The position numbers and the translations under genes were made by a program. Shown here one piece after another: positions 109 to 35,907 of a DNA stretch of 64,000 nucleotides; within the stretch, counting starts at the first letter, position 1; each line of letters begins with the position of its first letter. The stretch comes from Obrimoposthia wandeli (lineage: Eukaryota). The stretch spans positions 62,001-126,000 of the forward strand of contig CDROCS010002866.1 of the NCBI GenBank assembly GCA_977020255.1, in the 5' to 3' direction. The notes under the pieces are model-generated. The model was not told where the DNA came from, made no database searches, and was given only the letters and a program-made list of their open reading frames with translations.

Positions 109-843
109 TCATTCCAACTTGCCAAGATAACGCTGTAAACTGAAACCTACAGTGAGTGAAAGCTTGTCCGCGGCGGTTCTTAAATCAGGCGCAGAGGTAC
201 CATCTTTTTGTCGACCGGCAAAAATGATCAAGTTACCATCGCCAGATTCACAACTGCGCACATCGGCATATTGTTTGCGTAAATAGCTTAATAACTCAGT
301 GTGATCGTTTTCTCTACCCCAGCAGTTAAGTACCAACCAGCCATTCACTTTTAACTGCGCTGTACATAAATCAATGTACTCTTTACTCACTTGAACAGCT
401 TGCATGCCCTCATCTGTGTATAAATCAGTCATTATCAAATCAACTTTTTTATCCACACCGCGCTTTAAATAAGCACTAGCATCTTCGCAATGCAAAGTGA
501 TTTTTTTACTCGTAGGGAGTCTGAAATACTTTTTAGCGATATCAATAACCGCTTGTCGAATTTCAACCGCTTCAATACGCACCCCTGCAACACTGTGGCG
601 CATAGCCTGTAACAAACTACCAGCACCTAAACCTAATAATAAAACTCTTTTAGGTTCGCAAAATAGCAATGACATCATCATCGCTTGGGTGTAAGCATGT
701 TGTAATAGATGCGGTTGTTGAGTTAATTGTATGCTTTGCTCATCCCCCACTCCAAAAGATAGGATACGACAATCCCCTTCTTCCATTACAGCAATGTCGC
801 CATACTCATCGGTTTGGGTGTATAAATATTTCGGTGTATTCAA
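109..843 (-). CDS. Spermidine synthase-like SAM-dependent methyltransferase
   Basis: LLLGLGAGS SAM-binding motif, AVEI, EDA, DLIMTDLY and GWLVLN motifs typical of class I spermidine-synthase-like methyltransferases. Confidence 0.8.
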   Translation of the reverse strand: MNTPKYLYTQTDEYGDIAVMEEGDCRILSFGVGDEQSIQLTQQPHLLQHAYTQAMMMSLLFCEPKRVLLLGLGAGSLLQAMRHSVAGVRIEAVEIRQAVIDIAKKYFRLPTSKKITLHCEDASAYLKRGVDKKVDLIMTDLYTDEGMQAVQVSKEYIDLCTAQLKVNGWLVLNCWGRENDHTELLSYLRKQYADVRSCESGDGNLIIFAGRQKDGTSAPDLRTAADKLSLTVGFSLQRYLGKLE

Positions 844-960
844 TTGTTTCTCATTGCGTTAAATGCTGATGTGAACTAATAGCCAATCTGGTTTAGCTAA
901 AAGAGAGGGAAAGGTAGAGAATATAGCTAACTTTAGTTTTTTTGCAATGATTAGTGATAG

Positions 961-1032
961 CTAAGGAACGTGTGATCAAGCACCTTAGTTATCCACGGAG
1001 AAAGTTTAGGGGCTTAATCGCGTGCTCCCTGA
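961..1032. mobile_element. Short IS5-like MITE, family B copy 1
   Basis: CTAA-GGAAC...GCTCC-CTGA with imperfect terminal inverted repeats; its reverse complement aligns with 55031-55091. Confidence 0.55.
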
Positions 1033-1051
1033 CATTTAAGACAGATAAACT

Positions 1052-1157
1052 CATTAGTGTCCGGTTTAATTCTGTTGTTCATTAATTCATTGATTTCACG
1101 TTAATCACAAGTATTATTTGGCTAATAAAACACTATGCCATCAATGAGTAAAGAGCC
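1052..1157. mobile_element. MITE family A copy with truncated right end, flanked by a 9-bp direct repeat AGATAAACT
   Basis: First 19 nt CATTAGTGTCCGGTTTAAT are identical to the element at 61835; TCATTGATTT and TCAATGAGT blocks are shared; AGATAAACT at 1043-1051 and 1158-1166. Confidence 0.7.
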
Positions 1158-1173
1158 AGATAAACTACTGAGA

Positions 1174-1899
1174 CTAATCGATTGCCACAATAACCACTAC
1201 TTCAACTAACTCAATCGTTGCACCTGCCGTATCACCGGTTAGGCCATCTAATCTGTTTAACATCATATTGCGCAAGGCAAACACACAAACCACTGCCGCT
1301 AGTACAATGTTAAAAGGAGCGAGTAGCAAGGCACCAACAATACCGAGTATACAGCTACAAAAAACCCGCTGTTTAGGTGCATGCTTAACTAAAATAGCGC
1401 CAATACCGCCTTCTCTGACATAAGGCGTCATCAATAATAGTATAGGCAGTAATGAGCGACTAACTAAAGGTGCTATTAAGAGCATCCAATGTAACTGCAA
1501 TTGAATGATCGCCACAATAGCACTTAATTTCAGTACTAATGTGCACACTAACATCACCACGGCAATTGGTCCGCTACAAGGATCTTTCATGATAGCGAGA
1601 GTGCGTAGCTTATCCCCTTGCCCCCCTATCCAAGCATCACAGCTATCCGCTAAGCCATCAAGATGTAGCGCACCGGTTATTACCACCCATAAAGTTAATA
1701 CGACTGCTGCTGTTAAAAACGCAGGCGCGGCTGATAAAGCAATGGCAACTGCCGCTAGCATCACACCAATCAACAGACCTATAATCGGGTAAAAGATAAG
1801 CGATGCCGCGACTGTTTTATCATCAGGATAGTGCTTAAACTTCACTGGGATTTGCGTTAAAAATTGCAGCGATACTAGTAAGCTTTTAAAGTAATTCAA
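1174..1899 (-). CDS. cobS: Adenosylcobinamide-GDP ribazoletransferase (cobalamin synthase)
   Basis: FLTQIP, TGALHLDGLADSCD, IMKDP and GLTGDTAGA motifs; polytopic membrane protein. Confidence 0.95.
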   Translation of the reverse strand: MNYFKSLLVSLQFLTQIPVKFKHYPDDKTVAASLIFYPIIGLLIGVMLAAVAIALSAAPAFLTAAVVLTLWVVITGALHLDGLADSCDAWIGGQGDKLRTLAIMKDPCSGPIAVVMLVCTLVLKLSAIVAIIQLQLHWMLLIAPLVSRSLLPILLLMTPYVREGGIGAILVKHAPKQRVFCSCILGIVGALLLAPFNIVLAAVVCVFALRNMMLNRLDGLTGDTAGATIELVEVVVIVAID

Positions 1900-2456
1900 A
1901 ATTTTATACTCAATAACTGACCATGCTCTACCGGAAAATTCAGCATTGAAGAAATCGGCAATTGTTGTTCTTGACTCAATAAATAGCGCATCACGCCACC
2001 GTGCGCTATTACCAGCACTGTTTTGTCAGCGTGCTGTTGCTTGATATCGTTAATGGCGAAATCAATACGCTGGCTAAACTGCGCCAAACTTTCGCCATTG
2101 TTAGGTGGGTATTGCTCTGGGTTCGACCAAAATTTTTCTAACTTATCAGGGTATTGCTCCATTACTTCAAGCGCTGTTTTATGCTCCCAATCGCCAAAGT
2201 GGTATTCAGCTAGCCCCTTTTCGATAATCAGTTCAATACCTTGCTCTTGTGCTAGCTGCTGTGCAAATTTAGCACACCTTTGTAAAGGCGAGCTGATAAT
2301 TAACTGCCAGCGCTTTCCTGTACCTAAAAAAGCATCAACACTGGCGCGCATTTGCGCATGGCCAAGCTCCGTGAGTGCCACATCAGTTGAACCGATGTAA
2401 GCACTGCCCGCACTAGTTTTTCCATGGCGTAGTAAATACAGAGCATTACTACTCAT
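1896..2456 (-). CDS. cobC: Alpha-ribazole phosphatase (histidine phosphatase family); start moved to ATG 2456
   Basis: LLRHG, SSPLQRC, LAEYHFGDWE, NGES and AHGG motifs; lies between cobT and cobS. Confidence 0.85.
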   Translation of the reverse strand: MSSNALYLLRHGKTSAGSAYIGSTDVALTELGHAQMRASVDAFLGTGKRWQLIISSPLQRCAKFAQQLAQEQGIELIIEKGLAEYHFGDWEHKTALEVMEQYPDKLEKFWSNPEQYPPNNGESLAQFSQRIDFAINDIKQQHADKTVLVIAHGGVMRYLLSQEQQLPISSMLNFPVEHGQLLSIKF

Positions 2457-3510
2457 CAAGTTTTCCCGCCACCGCAGCTTCTTCAAAAGTAGCCATTTGC
2501 GCATGTAGTTTGCAGGCCATTTGTAAAAGCGGCACACAAAGCGCTGCACCACTGCCTTCCCCTAAACGCATACCTAAATCTAGTATGGGTGTCGCTTTTA
2601 AATGCGCTAACATCAATTTATGACCAGGCTCTGCTGAACCGTGCGAGAAAATCATCCAGTTACGGCTCTGGGGTGATATCGCTACTGCAACCATTGCGGC
2701 GGCACTGCAAATAAAACCATCCACTAAAATGGTGATACCACATTGTGCGGCACTGATATAACTACCGACTAATGCCGCTATTTCAAAACCGCCCATTTTT
2801 TGTAACAGCTGTTCAGGGCTATTTAGGGCATCAGGTTGGGTATTAAAATGTTTTTCTAACACTTGCTCAATGGCCGTTACTTTTCTGCGAATACCCTCTT
2901 CATCTAAACCAGTACCGGGGCCTGTTAAATGCGCAGCTGATTCACCGCTAATCGCTGCTGCCAGCGCCGTTGCAGCTGTTGTATTACCAATGCCCATATC
3001 GCCACCAATAAATAGCTGGCAACCTAGTGCTTGCGCTTTTAGCAGGCTATTACGTCCTACTTCTAATGCCTTTGCACATTGCTCGCTAGTCATCGCCTGG
3101 GCATCTAGCATATTTGCAGTACCGGGCCCTACATACTCATTGATAACCCCTGGAAACTCTGTCGGCGTCACTGTCCCTAAATTAACGATATCAAAAGGCG
3201 CTAATAACGTTTTTGCCAACACGCTAATCGCCGCGCCACCATTGGCAAAATTAGCCACCATTTGCGCCGTCACTTCTTGGGGAAATGCCGATACGCCACT
3301 GGCTGCAATACCGTGATCCGCGGCAAATATACAAATATAAGGTTTATCTACACTAGGGGTTCCACCTTGCATAGCCGCTAAACTTATCGCTATTTCTTCA
3401 AGCTTACCCAATGACCCTAAAGGTTTGGTTAATTGCTGTTGACGAGCTATGGCTGCTTGTTCAGCTGAGCTATTTAAATCTTTTATTGGCTCAAAAATCC
3501 AATTATTCAT
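2449..3510 (-). CDS. cobT: Nicotinate-nucleotide-dimethylbenzimidazole phosphoribosyltransferase
   Basis: LTKPLGSLGKLE, FAADHG, GDMGIGNTT, GGFEIAA and RLGEGSGA motifs. Confidence 0.97.
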   Translation of the reverse strand: MNNWIFEPIKDLNSSAEQAAIARQQQLTKPLGSLGKLEEIAISLAAMQGGTPSVDKPYICIFAADHGIAASGVSAFPQEVTAQMVANFANGGAAISVLAKTLLAPFDIVNLGTVTPTEFPGVINEYVGPGTANMLDAQAMTSEQCAKALEVGRNSLLKAQALGCQLFIGGDMGIGNTTAATALAAAISGESAAHLTGPGTGLDEEGIRRKVTAIEQVLEKHFNTQPDALNSPEQLLQKMGGFEIAALVGSYISAAQCGITILVDGFICSAAAMVAVAISPQSRNWMIFSHGSAEPGHKLMLAHLKATPILDLGMRLGEGSGAALCVPLLQMACKLHAQMATFEEAAVAGKLDE

Positions 3511-26764: not shown

Positions 26765-27030
26765 TGCAGGTAGTCGCTAATATGGCTTAGACGACTTATA
26801 AGCGATGCTGACTTATTGCTACTATCCTCTTCTCTTTGCTTGCTATTACTTCTACCTATTTTCTCAATTTTTTAATACAGTAAGAAATCACATGACAGCC
26901 ATACAGTTAAATTTTAATAATGAACTCCGCCCTAAGCTATAAAGTTGTTTGCCGTTTTCAACTAACTGATGATTAAGCGATATGTGGTTAATTCTGCTAG
27001 ATTTTAGCAAATGATTTTCTTTTTAATGTC

Positions 27031-27240
27031 TAAAATCAAAATATTAAAAGCGGTTTCGACTACGTCGAGTTCATTTCTTTTGCATGGCCAAAAGAAACAG
27101 AACCAAAGAAAAGGCCACCCAAGATTACCGAATGATTCCTATACTATTCACTAAATTGACGGCGGTAATCTGATGGGATTCTTTTTGGCCCGCTGCCATA
27201 ATGACTATCAGCCTAAAGTAAATCTGATTACGCTTATTAA
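27031..27240 (-). repeat. Truncated terminal cassette, paralogue of the ORF-less first cassette (no attC found downstream)
   Basis: 27051-27120 matches 34424-34493 at 66/70 nt by eye; begins with the same G|TTAATA core as cassette 1. Confidence 0.75.
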
Positions 27241-27382: not shown

Positions 27383-27622
27383 ATGGCTAAAAACACAAGT
27401 GTTACACTAGGTGATCATTTTGATCAATTTATAAACCAACAACTTAATACTGGACGTTATGGCTCAGCAAGCGAAATTGTTAGAGCGGGATTAAGAGCTT
27501 TAGAAGATCAAGAAGCTAAGCTTTTAAACTTACGCAATATGCTAATCCAAGGCGAACAAAGCGGTGCTGCCGAATACAGCTATGAAGGCTTATTGTCTGA
27601 ATTAGATAAAGATAACCATTAA
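27383..27622 (+). CDS. parD: ParD-like RHH antitoxin (CC2985 type), cassette-borne, antisense to the array
   Basis: NTSVTLGDHFDQFI...GRYGSASEIVRAGLRALE; stop codon overlaps the toxin start (TAATG). Confidence 0.9.
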   Translation: MAKNTSVTLGDHFDQFINQQLNTGRYGSASEIVRAGLRALEDQEAKLLNLRNMLIQGEQSGAAEYSYEGLLSELDKDNH

Positions 27623-27915
27623 TGAATAAGTTTGTATTATCTTCGAAAGCCAAAACAGACTTAATTAAAATAGCTAAATATACTCAAATAACTTGGGGAC
27701 TTTCTCAGCGGAATGATTACTTAAAGGTATTGGATAATACGTTTAACTTATTAGCTGATGATCCAGGCCTAGGTATTAACTGTGATTACATTAGAGAAGG
27801 TTACAGTAAATACCCACAAGCCAGTCATGTAATTTATTACAAAGAAAATAAAAGCAACCAAATCTTTATAGTAAGAATATTATATAAAAGTATGGATGTT
27901 AACTCCGCACTCTAG
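27622..27915 (+). CDS. parE: ParE/RelE-family toxin
   Basis: LSSKAKTDL-KIAKYT-TWG, LADDPGLG, SHVIYYK and IVRILYKSMD motifs. Confidence 0.9.
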   Translation: MNKFVLSSKAKTDLIKIAKYTQITWGLSQRNDYLKVLDNTFNLLADDPGLGINCDYIREGYSKYPQASHVIYYKENKSNQIFIVRILYKSMDVNSAL

Positions 27916-28418: not shown

Positions 28419-28510
28419 AGCTAACGCCGCATTAAGCTGATAAAAATGGTTGGTTATAATCGCGGAGCGATGCCCAACTGTTTTTATTCCGTTTAAGCAA
28501 CTTGTTGAAC
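28419..28510 (-). other. attC whose R'' box is the insertion point of the recombinase-HUH element
   Basis: GTTCAAC-AAGTT-GCTTAAAC...GCTTAAT-GCGGC-GTTAGCT. Confidence 0.88.
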
Positions 28511-28611
28511 GAAGCCGCTATGCGGCAGAAAAAACAGCAACTCTCCAGCCTTTAAGCGCACCCTATCTATGAGGTAATCAATTTTGATTATCAAACATAG
28601 GAGGGTTCCTC

Positions 28612-29511
28612 ATGAACTCAGCAGACCAGAAAATCACCGAACATCTTTACCAGCAACATATTACCAACCTTAAACTGCAAGGTAAACGACCCAATACTAT
28701 CGATTCTTACTCTCGATCATTACGTCGATTAACTGCTTTCTTTGATCGAAGACCCGATGAATTAAATACCAATGATCTAAAATGCTATTTTGCTTCACTC
28801 ATTCAAACTCACTCTTGGAGTACTGTCAAAGTAGATCGCAATGCTTTCCAGTTTTTCTACCGTTTCGTGATTAATAGACCTTGGGAATGGCTCAATATCG
28901 TCAAACCACCTCAAGTAAAAACACTCCCCGATATCCTAACACCCAATGAAATTTCAGCTATTATTTCACGCACTAAACAACTGCGATATCAAACTTTCTT
29001 TCTCACCCTTTATAGCTTGGGACTACGCTTAGGTGAAGGACGGCATCTGGCGGTTGGTGATATAGACAAAGCGCTAATGCAAGTACATATCCGCAATGCT
29101 AAAGGAGGAAAAGACCGATACATCACACTGCCGCAGCGCACCTTGAAAGCACTACGCTTCTACTGGGTAACCCACCGCCATCCCAAATGGATATTCCCTG
29201 GTAAATCGTCTACACCGGACACTGTGATTGATTCAAGCGGCATACAAAAGGCGCTCAGAGCGGTTGTTAAAGAATGTCCCTTCAATAAGAAAGTGTCTCC
29301 GCATACTTTACGACATTGCTATGCAACCCACTTGCTCGAACTGGGTGTCGATTTGCGTTCCCTACAATCTTTACTTGGGCACAACAGCTTAAACACCACT
29401 GCTCGGTACACCCAGCTCACTGATATACGAATCAAAGATACGGCAAATAAAATCGATTTACTCGCTGACAACCTTTCTATTGATTGGGAGGTGAGTCATG
29501 ACGCTGGCTAA
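28612..29511 (+). CDS. Tyrosine recombinase (phage integrase family, N-terminal SAM-like domain), intact
   Basis: YSLGLR, AKGGKDR, HTLRHCYATHLL, LLGH and TTARY: full R-K-H-R-H-Y set; lacks the IntI-specific insertion. Confidence 0.93.
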   Translation: MNSADQKITEHLYQQHITNLKLQGKRPNTIDSYSRSLRRLTAFFDRRPDELNTNDLKCYFASLIQTHSWSTVKVDRNAFQFFYRFVINRPWEWLNIVKPPQVKTLPDILTPNEISAIISRTKQLRYQTFFLTLYSLGLRLGEGRHLAVGDIDKALMQVHIRNAKGGKDRYITLPQRTLKALRFYWVTHRHPKWIFPGKSSTPDTVIDSSGIQKALRAVVKECPFNKKVSPHTLRHCYATHLLELGVDLRSLQSLLGHNSLNTTARYTQLTDIRIKDTANKIDLLADNLSIDWEVSHDAG

Positions 29512-30532
29512 CATCATTAAAGAACATCGAGCGGCGTTTATTGCGCGCAATCATCAACGTATCACACCTAGAATGTTGCGCTTAATGGATGCCTTATTAT
29601 TATGTCGCTCTGAGCAGGCCGGGAAAAGTTTATGGCACTGCAAACATTGCCAGTCCATTGAGCGATTTCCGTTGTCTTGTGGGCATAGAAGCTGCCCGAT
29701 GTGTCAACAGCGTGACACAAGCCAGTGGTTTGAAAGAGAGCAGGAAAAGTTGTTACCTGTGGATTATTTTATGCTGACGTTGACTCTACCTTTTGAGCTG
29801 CGCAACGTCGTTTGGCGTAACCAGCGTAGGGTCTATGCTGCTATGTTTACGATTGCATCGCAATTGGTTAAAGACTTTGCAATGACCTCAACCAAGCTCG
29901 GTGCAGAACCGGGCTTTATCAGTGTGTTGCATACTCATACCCGAAAGCTCGACTACCATCCCCACTTGCATATTGTGATTCCAGGCGGTGGATATAATCG
30001 ACCAAAGCAGCAATGGATCAAAAATAAAGGTGGGTATTTATTCAATCAAGCTGCTGTGGCTAAAGTGTGGCGAGCGAGAATGCTGAATTACCTCAACCAA
30101 GAAAAGCTTAAGTTCCCCAAGCTTCCCCTTCAATGGATTGTTGACTGTCGAAAAGTGGGGCGTGGCTTACCCGCGCTTAAGTACCTCTCGCAGTATTTAT
30201 ACCGAGGTGTACTTAAAGATCAGAATATTATCAGTTCAAATAATGGCGAAGTAACCTTCAAATATTGGAAAAATACAGGTGAGCGATGTACACGCACACT
30301 GCCTGTACTCGACTTTATTTGGCTAGTATTACAGCATGTTCTACCTAGGCGTTTTCGGCGTTTGCGCTGCTACGGATTTTTACACAGTGGCGGTAAGCAA
30401 CTACTAAAGCGAATTCAATTATTACTGTTAGTCATCCTACCGGCGAAAGGTAAAGCGCGAAAGAAACCTGATGTGCTATGTCCTCACTGTCAATATGCGA
30501 TGACCTTTCTGTTGATTTCGCGTCGACGATAA
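29498..30532 (+). CDS. IS91-family (Y2 HUH) transposase / rolling-circle protein
   Basis: N-terminal Zn-binding region (CRS...HCKHC...SCGHRSCPMC), HTH...HPHLH HUH motif, YLSQY Y2 motif, RCYG and C-terminal CPHC. Confidence 0.92.
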   Translation: MTLANIIKEHRAAFIARNHQRITPRMLRLMDALLLCRSEQAGKSLWHCKHCQSIERFPLSCGHRSCPMCQQRDTSQWFEREQEKLLPVDYFMLTLTLPFELRNVVWRNQRRVYAAMFTIASQLVKDFAMTSTKLGAEPGFISVLHTHTRKLDYHPHLHIVIPGGGYNRPKQQWIKNKGGYLFNQAAVAKVWRARMLNYLNQEKLKFPKLPLQWIVDCRKVGRGLPALKYLSQYLYRGVLKDQNIISSNNGEVTFKYWKNTGERCTRTLPVLDFIWLVLQHVLPRRFRRLRCYGFLHSGGKQLLKRIQLLLLVILPAKGKARKKPDVLCPHCQYAMTFLLISRRR

Positions 30533-30743
30533 AGATGATGGAATGTTATTAACGATTGGAACGTAAATACTAACAAAAGGAAAAGCCTATAAAAATAGTT
30601 TAGTAATCAATACCCTAAATATTAGCGAAACAAGCTAAGGACGGCGCTCGGCTTCCTATAATACAAACGAAACCTGCCACTTTAGTCCCGTCAAAATATT
30701 CATCCGTTATCCACTATATAAAGGTACGACCACCACCGGGCTT

Positions 30744-30798
30744 GTCCAACAACCTGATAAGGCGCCGGCTGCGCGACGCCTATCCTTATTTGTTAGCC
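30744..30798 (+). other. attC-like site at the right end of the IS91-like element, oriented opposite to the array
   Basis: Plus strand GTCCAAC-AACCT-GAT[A]AGGC...GCCTATC-CTTATTT-GTT; the extra base is on the plus-strand L'' arm. Confidence 0.6.
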
Positions 30799-31679
30799 GT
30801 TTTTACTTGCAAAAGAAAATCTAAGAAGTGCTGTCTATTTATTTGAAAAGCACCTTCCATACCCATATACGCTATTAATAATGAACCATTTGACGATGGT
30901 AAAAAGGTAATTTCTTTATGTAGTAAAGCTTCTTCATTATAGAGGTAATAACTTTCTAGTTTTTTAACTCCCAATGGCTTAGCTATAATTTTTGAGTCTA
31001 TTTCAAATTGGGTTAACCAATAATCATTAAATTCTTTAGTTTCTTCAGAAGGTGAATAAATCAACATTATGGTTGATTGTGAGCGACCCGCTTGCGATTT
31101 ATCTTTTACAGCTCCTGTCGAGATAGTTAATAACTGCGTTCCCATCCCGTTGGTAGCATTAAATTCGTTTATAGCACCTATCATGAAATAGTAAGGGAAT
31201 TTTGCAGACCAATTCCCACTTTTAGCTTCAACTCTGAACATGTCATTTATAGCAGAGATTTTTATTCCTTCGCTGACTTTCATAAATGAAGGCATAGCCT
31301 TCATTTTATCGTTCTTAACTTGGTTATAAAATAAGTGTGAACCATAAGCGCCAAGTTTTTCGCTCCAAGAAAGCAAAGTACTCAAAACAAGATCATTTTC
31401 TGCGGGAAGAATTACTCCATCTTTATTGTTTAGCTCTGAAACATACGAACTTAATAAATAATATAAATGTTCTCTCGGTCCCTTCATAGTTTGAGCATTT
31501 AATTTTGAGTAATTGGTGTTTAGCCAATTATTAAACGCTGTTGAATCAACAATAACTTTAGCATAATCAAAAACAGGCTCTGCAAGTGGTAGTTTGGAAT
31601 ATCCATCCATTGGTTTGTAATCACTTGCGTAATTATTTAATGAAATGAATGATAAAAAAAAGATTATTAAAATTTTCAA
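30786..31679 (-). CDS. Cassette-encoded secreted/periplasmic hypothetical protein (297 aa)
   Basis: N-terminal MKILIIFFLSFISLNNYA signal-peptide-like segment; bounded by the GGCTAAC/GTTAGCC pair. Confidence 0.8.
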   Translation of the reverse strand: MKILIIFFLSFISLNNYASDYKPMDGYSKLPLAEPVFDYAKVIVDSTAFNNWLNTNYSKLNAQTMKGPREHLYYLLSSYVSELNNKDGVILPAENDLVLSTLLSWSEKLGAYGSHLFYNQVKNDKMKAMPSFMKVSEGIKISAINDMFRVEAKSGNWSAKFPYYFMIGAINEFNATNGMGTQLLTISTGAVKDKSQAGRSQSTIMLIYSPSEETKEFNDYWLTQFEIDSKIIAKPLGVKKLESYYLYNEEALLHKEITFLPSSNGSLLIAYMGMEGAFQINRQHFLDFLLQVKTANK

Positions 31680-31701
31680 ATTGCTTCCCTGCTCGATAAA
31701 C

Positions 31702-31801
31702 GGCTAACGCCCTGTTAACAGGCAAAAAATTGTTGGCTAAAATAAGCGACGAAGGAGCAAAAGCCAACTGTTTTTTGTCCTTGTTTAACAGCTTGTTAGG
31801 T
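31702..31801 (-). other. attC, long family (AATAAGCGACGAAGGAG core)
   Basis: R'' ACCTAAC and R' GTTAGCC; internal similarity to 27235-27333. Confidence 0.92.
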
Positions 31802-34321: not shown

Positions 34322-34694
34322 CGATATTACTCGCTGTTTATTCAGTGAGGGTAACGAAACATTCTTAATATGAACACTTTTAACTGATTTATTTTTTAAA
34401 GTTTAAAATCAAAAGATTAAAATCGGTTTCGACTTCGTCGAGTTCATTTCTTTTGTGTGGCCAAAAGAAACCGAACCAAAGAAAAGGCCACCCACGATCA
34501 CCGAAAGATTCCTCCACTATTTACCAAATGAACGGCCGTTCGACAGGGCCATCCATGGCCCACTCACTCTACGCGACATCATGTCGCTCCGCTTCGTTAA
34601 TTTAGTAAATAGCTACGGCGGTAATCTGAAGGGTAATTTTAGTCCTCTGCAATAATTAACACGAAACTAGAGCAAACAAAGCAAATCGTATTAA
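34245..34694 (-). other. First cassette, 450 bp, ORF-less, carrying a highly structured repeat
   Basis: Bounded by G|TTAATA (34695) and R'' TATTAAC (34315-21); no sense-strand ORF of 60 aa or more; several nested hairpins. Confidence 0.75.
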
Positions 34695-34923: not shown

Positions 34924-35907
34924 ATGAAATCACCTTTCCTTCGACTTATCCGCGAGCATATGCTCGCCAGACATTACGCCGTTCGCACTGTTGATACGTA
35001 CCTTTATTGGATTAAATACTACATCAACTTCAATAAAAAAACTCACCCCTCGAAACTCAATGAGTGGCATGTAGAAGCATTTCTCACCTTCCTAATTGTC
35101 GAAAGAAATGTAGCAATTAGCACTCAAACTGTCGCATTAAATGCCGTTGTTTATTTATACAGAGAAATAGATAAATCCCCACTTTTTATGAATATGAATT
35201 TCACTAAGAGTAAGCGTGCAACAAAATTACCTACAGTACTAACAGCCGATGAAGTCAAAAAATTATTAACGCTAATGCCCATAGCCCAACAATTACTCGC
35301 TAAACTCATGTACGGCAGTGGTTTACGTTTAATGGAAGCGATTCGATTACGTGTAAAGGACATTGATTTTAACTACCACACTTTGAGTATTTTTAATGCT
35401 AAAGGTGGAAAACACCGCAGAGTCACTCTGGCCCGAGAATTGACTCAAGATTTAAAAGAACAAATAAATATCAGTAGGAAGTACTTTGAAGCCGATAAGC
35501 TTAACTCTGGATATGCTGGGGTATATTTACCGCATGCTTTACATAGAAAATATCCTAGCGCACCTTACCAATTACTATGGCATTACTTATTTCCATCAGG
35601 TAATTTAAGCATTGACCCTAGGACAAAAACACAGAGACGGCAGCACATAGATGCAACGACCTTTCAAAAGGCCATCAGACGCGCCGCCATAAAGGCAAAT
35701 ATAGAAAAACAAGTCACTGCCCACACATTACGCCATTCTTTCGCGACCCATTTATTACAACGCGGTACTGATATCAGGACAGTGCAAGAACAACTGGGCC
35801 ATAGCGATTTACGTACCACTCAATACCCGTTAGTTGGATAGTATACTCATGTCATTCAAGCGGGCGCTAATGGTGTTATCAGCCCTTTAAGCACTCTGCC
35901 TACTTAG
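34924..35907 (+). pseudogene. intI: Integron integrase, interrupted by an in-frame TAG (35839-41) before the catalytic YTHV motif
   Basis: MYGSGLRLME, KGGKHR, IntI patch (GVYLPHALHRKYP...W-YLFPS...DPRT...RRQH), HTLRHSFATHLL, LGH, then TTQ-YPLVG-stop-YTHVIQAGANGVISPL in the same frame. Confidence 0.88.

Follow-up and report, generated by a model that had tools for sequence, protein, structure and literature searches.

To our knowledge, the mobile elements that home to the attC sites of integrons are of two kinds only, the IS1111-attC insertion sequences and the group IIC-attC introns. The former employ a DEDD transposase; the latter insert antisense to the cassettes, at TTGT|T on the attC bottom strand, and employ a ribozyme and a reverse transcriptase. 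IS1111-attC elements, a group of the IS110 family, always enter attC at one position and face the same way (cited in PMC9229058). Here we describe what is very probably a third kind, an IS91-family element that carries a tyrosine recombinase gene, relies on different enzymes, and occurs widely in chromosomal integrons of marine bacteria. The copy analyzed lies in a 64,000-nt stretch of contig CDROCS010002866.1 (positions 62,001 to 126,000, forward strand), which belongs to the assembly deposited for Obrimoposthia wandeli (GCA_977020255.1); this whole stretch is referred to as the window, and positions are counted from its first base. The window lies on a bacterial contig within this 1.35-Gb, 6912-contig assembly and carries a small chromosomal integron, one attC of which is interrupted by the element.

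IS91 inserts as a bottom-strand single-stranded circle, and the terIS of IS801 and IS1294 consists of a subterminal palindrome beside a GTTC cleavage site (PMC13181058). The genes of IS91 lie between terIS, which is upstream, and oriIS, which is downstream. The element studied here falls in a subgroup that is presumably the ISShvi3 / ISSde12 / ISSod25 type. The element and this type have in common two genes in the same order and overlapping hosts (Shewanella and relatives), and a homologue in Shewanella denitrificans OS217 (P0049) is 64% identical; they probably form one group that has been catalogued already. ISShvi3 has been seen in Shewanella integrons in a survey that recorded no insertion sequence (IS) interrupting an attC (PMC9229058), and our search of the literature found no account of attC targeting, or of an attC-like junction, for IS91-type elements. 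The copy itself is a new member of a catalogued group, and what is new here is the site- and orientation-specific targeting of attC.

RESULTS

Insertion into attC in the window and across the family

The cassettes of the window lie on the - strand, from ~34705 down to ~27230, and its eight attC sites were all detected on the + strand by a covariance model (R1) that was trained on 20 uninterrupted attCs of these same marine hosts and applied to 627 kb. All eight read xTAACGC...CTTGTTA on the + strand, indicating that this strand is the attC bottom strand and that the element, whose genes are also on the + strand, is antisense to the array. The interrupted attC likewise has its bottom strand on the + strand, where it ends in CTTGTT. 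The original prediction, which was made from the letters of the window alone, held that a 2288-bp block with TTGTT at both junctions could be removed to restore the R'' box of this site. Direct reading confirms all parts of this observation at the positions given, including the pentamers (28502-28506 and 30790-30794), and joining the flanks gives ...CAACTTGTT|AGCCG on the + strand and an R'' box of GGCTAAC on the - strand, the exact complement of the GTTAGCC at 31708-31702. An intact version of the interrupted cassette, representing the empty site, was found neither in the assembly nor in the Nitrincola genome described below.

Relatives of the element show the same placement. A search with the recombinase at E<=1e-30 gave 4417 homologues, spread over Shewanella, Vibrio, Photobacterium, Psychromonas, Pseudoalteromonas, Rheinheimera, Ferrimonas, and others; a large number are on contigs of ~2.3 kb, as repeats would give. 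From species-representative genomes, 78 loci were fetched. The analysis covered 71 distinct left junctions in marine Gammaproteobacteria; the classes of junctions were tallied by hand from tables and not by script. In 47 of the 71, the junction falls exactly at the 3' GTT of an R1 match, and in every one of these 47 the match is on the strand of the element, with the insertion at R'' and antisense (two-sided binomial test, 1.4e-14). Another ~9 flanks either resemble attC on visual inspection or consist of half an attC. The R1 matches are on the intI strand in the six integrons that have intI in view (the window, L104 to L106, L111, and L112), indicating that the model reads the bottom strand and that the insertions are antisense to the cassettes.

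On the attC bottom strand, the strongly preferred target is CTTGTT|A in the R'' box. The left end of the element (GAACGAAG) is nearly invariant in the fetched loci, and the bases preceding it are always xTTGTT, with a single exception of TAGTT. The hexamer TTGTTA occurs about once per kb, such that attC sites contribute only a few percent of these motifs in a genome (an estimate, not a measurement). Diverged copies, with 65 to 68% DNA identity, are present on other bacterial contigs of the same assembly; one contig (C321) has three, each of which follows an attC at ...YTTGTT|GAACGAAGCCGC, and the two that have a complete right end finish in ...CTTATTTGTT|A. The random insertion at CTTG or GTTC tetranucleotides that the original prediction had named as its own refutation is not what the flanks of the homologues reveal, and the attC-specific, antisense, and site-specific insertion that it had foreseen is borne out across the family. 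None of the outcomes that it had listed as fatal to itself was observed. With high confidence, we regard the family as IS91-type elements that target attC and do not depend on IntI.

In Psychromonas arctica (L110, G182:C1:128500-133200; also L073 and L075), 134 bp separate an element from the intI downstream of it, which is on the other strand; the site is not an attC (CTTGTT|ATAG) but may be attI. In that case, insertion follows whichever strand carries TTGTT|A, whatever the direction of the array. The recombinase gene of the L110 copy is frameshifted, and near-identical fragments of the recombinase occur at three places in that genome, two of which have a copy of intI at a distance of a few hundred bases to a few kb. 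At L060 (3880-3905), the insertion lies 10 nt past the end of the attC, with a flank of CTTGTTATGTTCTTGTT|GAACG, and has used a second TTGTT just beyond R''.

Insertion without target duplication

The TTGTT present on both sides of the element was considered as a target duplication and rejected, as the left pentamer is target DNA and the right pentamer is element DNA. One of the Nitrincola copies (L019) has TAGTT on its left and TTGTT on its right, and the element is as in its six sister copies; the right pentamer differs among lineages, being TTATT in Psychromonas and TAGTT (L031), CTGTT, or TCGTT in others, all of which have TTGTT as their target. Because the pentamer on the left depends on the target and that on the right depends on the lineage, there is no duplication, and the crossover can be placed only at G|TT, GT|T, or GTT|. 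All 41 usable right ends are followed by an A as the first flanking base. Insertion occurs directly after (T/A)GTT and is followed by A, without duplication of the target.

The right end of the element consists of the box GTCCAAC (30744-30750), a hairpin with arms GATAAGGCG (30756-30764) and CGCCTATC (30777-30784) and one bulged A, and then CTTATTTGTT. In relatives, the conserved parts are the box GGGCTTGTYCAAC, a stem that reaches at most 15 bp and carries a single bulged base, and CTTATTTGTT. Five of the seven pairs of the inner stem have changed on both sides, and pairing is kept in 94% of cells. A lack of conservation in this hairpin had been named at the outset as an outcome that would contradict the proposal; the compensatory changes show the opposite. 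Joining the right end to the left end in sequence creates GTTGAAC, confirming that circularization would produce this box as the R' opposite GTCCAAC.

Folded in silico, the joined right-left junction has an outer helix in which GTTCAAC is extended to ~12 bp against GGCTTGTYCAAC, followed by an internal loop and the covarying stem. The bottom strands of these junctions fold at -11 to -16 kcal/mol (z of -2.1 to -4.6) and possess an additional T on the 3' arm, at the place of the extrahelical bases in attC bottom strands, and their R boxes fit the attC consensus RYYYAAC / GTTRRRY. After insertion, the right end and the displaced AGCC make up a short attC-like site, and GTTCAAC becomes the R'' of the old attC. 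In formal terms, a single cassette has been turned into two, with both halves attC-like and the array formally intact.

A scan of metagenomes uncovered a single natural right-left junction (L122; contig OJFP01002730.1, reverse 702-3312), in which the last 310 nt of an element stand head-to-tail with a complete, identical copy. This is a partial copy and not a circle; its breakpoint has neither GTTC nor TTGTT, and the start of the contig resembles a library adapter. Such an arrangement could arise by rolling-circle read-through, or by insertion of an element into the right end of a copy already present.

Mobility without IntI

The closest relative, whose recombinase protein is 90% identical, resides in a Nitrincola chromosome of 5.1 Mb. 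This genome contains seven scattered copies with 0 to 1 base difference over 2285 bp, of which only one (L021) is in an R1-detected attC, and the chromosome has no match above the IntI cutoff. The IntI of the window reads ...LGHSDLRTTQ YPLVG* YTHV... at 35809-35841, where an 18-nt in-frame block ending in TAG precedes the motif of the catalytic tyrosine; the resident integron is probably inactive, judging from this truncation. The burst of seven copies in an IntI-less genome, together with the truncated IntI of the window, indicates that IntI is not required, in agreement with the mobility without IntI that had been predicted.

Contigs assembled from one sequencing run (X1) have a k-mer depth of 26 to 36 on the element, versus 14 on its left flank and 10 on its right flank, and break at both ends of the element, which suggests that the source sample held further identical or free copies that are absent from the assembly. 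The Logan contigs of this run (contigs only) include no circle joint and no empty-site contig, a result that carries no weight either way.

Genes and ends of the element

By its sequence, the block is an intact member of the IS91 family in which a tyrosine recombinase gene lies upstream of, and overlaps, the gene for a Y2 HUH transposase (Table 1). These are its only two long open reading frames (ORFs), in a search that included no Rfam scan. The transposase reaches 341 bits against NF033538 (cutoff of 125), its HUH (HPHLH) and YxxxY (YLSQY) motifs and the RY motifs of the recombinase were all found, and both frames are open, which together with the Pfam matches corroborates the claim of a self-contained element with both proteins intact. 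The HUH domain also has a weak match to Rep_1 (PF01446; E 4e-4). As is characteristic of the IS91 family, the two ends are unlike, and both have subterminal palindromes. On the bottom strand, the left end presents a 5-bp hairpin, GCCGC-nnn-GCGGC, and then TTCGTTC, similar to the terIS of IS801 and IS1294.

The recombinase scores 150.5 bits against the IntI model TIGR02249, below the cutoff of 265. It is 29% identical to the IntI of the window over an alignment with 53 gap positions, in which the large gaps are on the side of the recombinase, where IntI has extra residues. On this comparison, it is an IntI/Xer-like protein that lacks the IntI-specific insertion in the catalytic domain. Its closest solved relatives are archaeal XerA/XerC-like proteins, followed by IntI4. 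A small maximum-likelihood tree places it with IntI, together with an unclassified recombinase from Nitrincola and away from XerC and XerD (support of 100/99, with a long-branch warning). Both the placement in the tree and the missing insertion agree with the published classification of IS91- and IS3-associated recombinases as "Integron-like" without the IntI insertion (bioRxiv 10.1101/542381).

TABLE 1 Features of the element, the interrupted attC, and the resident integron in the window
Feature	Position	Strand	Description or evidence
Whole IS91-family element	28507-30794	+	2288 bp; ends match the conserved left (GAACGAAGCCGC) and right (CTTATTTGTT) ends of ~70 relatives
Tyrosine recombinase ORF	28612-29511	+	299 aa; PF00589 and PF13495; 14-nt overlap with tnpA
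IS91-family Y2 HUH transposase ORF (tnpA)	29498-30532	+	344 aa; PF04986 (7.7e-41) and PF14319 (1.1e-25)
Left end, with small hairpin GCCGC-TAT-GCGGC (28514-28526)	28507-28530	+	Conserved across relatives
Right end, with box GGGCTTGTCCAAC, hairpin (30756-30784), and terminal CTTATTTGTT	30738-30794	+	nhmmer matches, covariation, and folds; oriIS-like
Main part of interrupted attC, with R' GTTAGCT at 28425-28419	28419-28506	-	R1 match at 28419-28510 on +, 26 bits, E 0.004
Target pentamer TTGTT, target-derived and outside the element	28502-28506	+	Comparison with Nitrincola L019
Rest of the attC R'' box (AGCC on +), split from the remaining attC	30795-30800	-	Direct reading of the sequence
Cassette with the interrupted attC, ORF 31679-30786, start GTTAGCC at 31708-31702	30786-31708	-	ORF without Pfam match
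Resident intI	34924-35841	+	TIGR02249, 404 bits, model positions 1-295 of 315; TAG just before YTHV

DISCUSSION

A candidate two-enzyme mechanism

The features of the junctions suggest a mechanism in which the two enzymes of the element act in succession. The HUH transposase would free the bottom strand as a single-stranded circle, cutting after GTTC at the terIS-like left end, as in IS91. The joined ends of the circle would fold into a mimic of an attC bottom strand, having a 7- to 12-bp R-box helix (GTTCAAC / GTTGRAC), an internal loop, the covarying stem, and the extra T on the 3' arm. The IntI-like recombinase of the element would then swap one strand at G|TT between the folded junction and a target that contains GTT, and replication would finish the insertion, as with integron cassettes. 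That the recombinase is the integrating enzyme and the HUH protein the circle maker is the reading that we favor, as close to an even proposition. Integration by the recombinase is favored by the GTT+R that is invariant in both partners, by the mimicry of an attC bottom strand at the junction, by the insertion of IS91 as exactly that strand, and by the canonical IS91 layout (oriIS downstream of tnpA, bottom strand transferred), in which the target bases abutting oriIS and 5' of the cut are NNNT, unlike the GTTC of ter.

Several observations weigh against this reading. The original prediction assigned integration to the element's own recombinase; the sequence is compatible with either the recombinase or the HUH transposase in that role, and canonical IS91 transposases excise and integrate unaided. 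On the sense strand, the target becomes YTTG|TT, which equals the CTTG preferred by IS91, and a route that uses the HUH protein alone fits it too. The preference for attC is strong, not absolute: about one-fifth of the insertions (~14 of the 71) are in non-attC sites, sharing only (T/A)GTT|A. The R-box pairing across the junction offers no compensatory change, 20 of 34 boxes being GTTCAAC, 12 GTCCAAC (which has one mismatch), and 2 GCTCAAC. At E<=0.1, R1 gave no attC match at the right end of the element or at the natural right-left junction, such that the label "attC-like" rests on motif and fold and not on the model; the attC-like right end of the original prediction stands by its motif, its fold with the ends joined, and its covariation, and fails by R1. 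Among 301 genomes of the order, IntI occurs in 22 of the 26 that have the recombinase and in 117 of the 275 that lack it (Fisher exact test, p = 4e-5), an association that fits an element living off integron arrays but that is confounded by taxonomy and inflated by shared ancestry.

Other explanations

There is a substantial minority chance that the Y2 transposase both excises and integrates the element, as in IS91, recognizing YTTG/TTGTT as a short single-stranded motif at the foot of a hairpin, with the recombinase as an accessory. IS91, IS801, and IS1294 need TnpA alone, and IS91 targets both CTTG and GTTC; the targets observed here (CTTG|TT, TTTG|TT, ATTG|TT, and TTAG|TT), together with a right end that finishes in TTTG|TT, can be read in the same manner, and the short motif alone is common to the insertions outside attC. 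The subterminal palindromes of both ends resemble those of oriIS and terIS, the bottom strand of the left end being a hairpin plus GTTC, and the head-to-tail partial copy of 310 nt in the metagenome contig is what rolling-circle read-through predicts. The recombinase gene overlaps tnpA just as the regulatory gene orf121 does in IS91, and from this position the protein might steer targeting, improve cleavage of the ends, or resolve multimers. The difficulty for a transposase acting alone is that the IS91 layout (terIS upstream, bottom strand moved) gives a sequence 5' of the cut that is not GTTC-like, unlike in IS801 and IS1294, and reading the target as CTTG requires that oriIS and terIS be swapped relative to the genes. 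It also leaves unexplained why both partners have an invariant GTT+A, why the R boxes (GTYCAAC and GTTGAAC) are consensus-like, and why an intact IntI-like recombinase is constantly retained in this subgroup.

A scheme in which the recombinase alone moves a small integrative element, and the HUH protein only replicates or amplifies the excised circle, seems improbable. It would account for the weak Rep_1 match of the HUH domain and for the excess of k-mer depth over the flanks in run X1, but this excess may represent further unassembled copies, the transposase is far above the IS91 equivalog cutoff, and the ends are IS91-like. Moreover, the junctions have no core sites of the type used by such recombinases, that is, paired inverted binding sites around an overlap of 6 to 8 bp.

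We reject as highly unlikely the insertion of the element by the host IntI as an ordinary large cassette with an attC-like site, which would agree with the formal cassette shape obtained when the boundaries are moved by two bases (TTGAAC ... GTCCAAC ... G) and with the attC-like fold of the junction, but for the use by IntI of R' or attI in sense orientation as opposed to R'' and antisense in 47 of 47 model-detected attC insertions, the recent burst in a genome without IntI above the cutoff, the missing catalytic tyrosine in the IntI of the window, the two genes and IS91-type ends of the element, and the failure of R1 to match its site.

Relation to known systems

With IS91, IS801, and IS1294, the element shares a transposase with a zinc-binding N terminus and Y2 HUH domain, the lack of target duplication, unlike ends with palindromes, a terIS-like GTTC end, an upstream gene that overlaps tnpA, and possibly the single-stranded circle intermediate that is known in IS91. 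It differs from them in that the upstream gene encodes a tyrosine recombinase instead of orf121, in that it targets TTGTT|A in attC and not simply any GTTC or CTTG, and in that the canonical strand assignment leaves target bases 5' of the cut that are unlike the ter tetranucleotide. Its insertion site is within a base or two of that of the group IIC-attC introns, which also need a folded single strand, but its ORFs specify DNA enzymes. Elements of the IS1111-attC group have other ends and encode neither a recombinase nor a HUH protein. In CTX-phi and other elements that exploit XerCD, a hairpin on a single-stranded circle mimics the recombination site and undergoes a Xer-type exchange of one strand (PMC4792948); these elements borrow the XerCD of their hosts and target dif, whereas the element studied here encodes its own recombinase and targets attC.

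Integron cassettes resemble the element in their folded bottom-strand hairpin, the RYYYAAC / GTTRRRY boxes, the extrahelical base, and a crossover compatible with G|TT; its recombinase groups with IntI, whose secondary targets need little beyond GTT. The recombinase differs in its lack of the extra IntI domain and its score below the family cutoff, the insertions are at R'' and antisense instead of at R' or attI, and the element carries its own enzymes and would make its own circle. It is conceivable, and on present evidence rather doubtful, that the element is a sister system of integron cassette recombination or a living relative of its ancestor, in which a circle made by a HUH protein and bearing a proto-attC is joined by an IntI-like recombinase, as yet without the extra IntI domain, at G|TT to attC, attI, or a bare GTT. 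If so, transposition would require two enzymes, with excision by the HUH protein and integration by the tyrosine recombinase, and it would constitute the first natural recombination of single-stranded hairpins by an element-encoded recombinase other than IntI.

In the element, the nearest relative of IntI outside integrons is paired with an enzyme that produces single-stranded circles, which bears on how hairpin recombination by IntI arose and on the unexplained recombinase of this IS91 subgroup. Its insertions split attC sites and create short attC-like ones, which can mislead the annotation of cassettes and alter their excision, and tools of the IntegronFinder type may miscount cassettes at these elements.

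Additional observations on arrays

A Psychromonas metagenome-assembled genome (G002; OY821666.1) has at least 10 copies or fragments of the element on the + strand between 232 and 605 kb, on both sides of intI (431762-432706, +), which points to a very large array, or more than one, heavily populated by the element. At L112 (2138-5781; G280:C1), an insert of ~2.6 kb interrupts the transposase gene between the codons for residues 2-170 and those for residues 170-343. Elsewhere in the assembly that contains the window, another cassette array has a solo right-end remnant of ~100 nt (L014, 5150-5252; G000:C253, ~3657150-3657251), in which the box, the hairpin, and CTTATTTGTT|A are present and no recombinase or transposase gene adjoins.

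The integron of the window has two further features. A noncoding repeat of ~250 bp occurs at 34378-34625, in the first cassette beside attI, and at 27030-27230, at the far end of the array; it has ~40 or more matches, at roughly 70 to 88% identity, in the Nitrincola chromosome (G001), and looks like a dispersed element that is structured or resembles a miniature inverted-repeat transposable element. At 27383-27915, a cassette for an antitoxin and toxin of the ParD/RelE type, named from the translations alone, is on the + strand, opposite to its neighbors; reversed toxin-antitoxin cassettes are common in chromosomal integrons.

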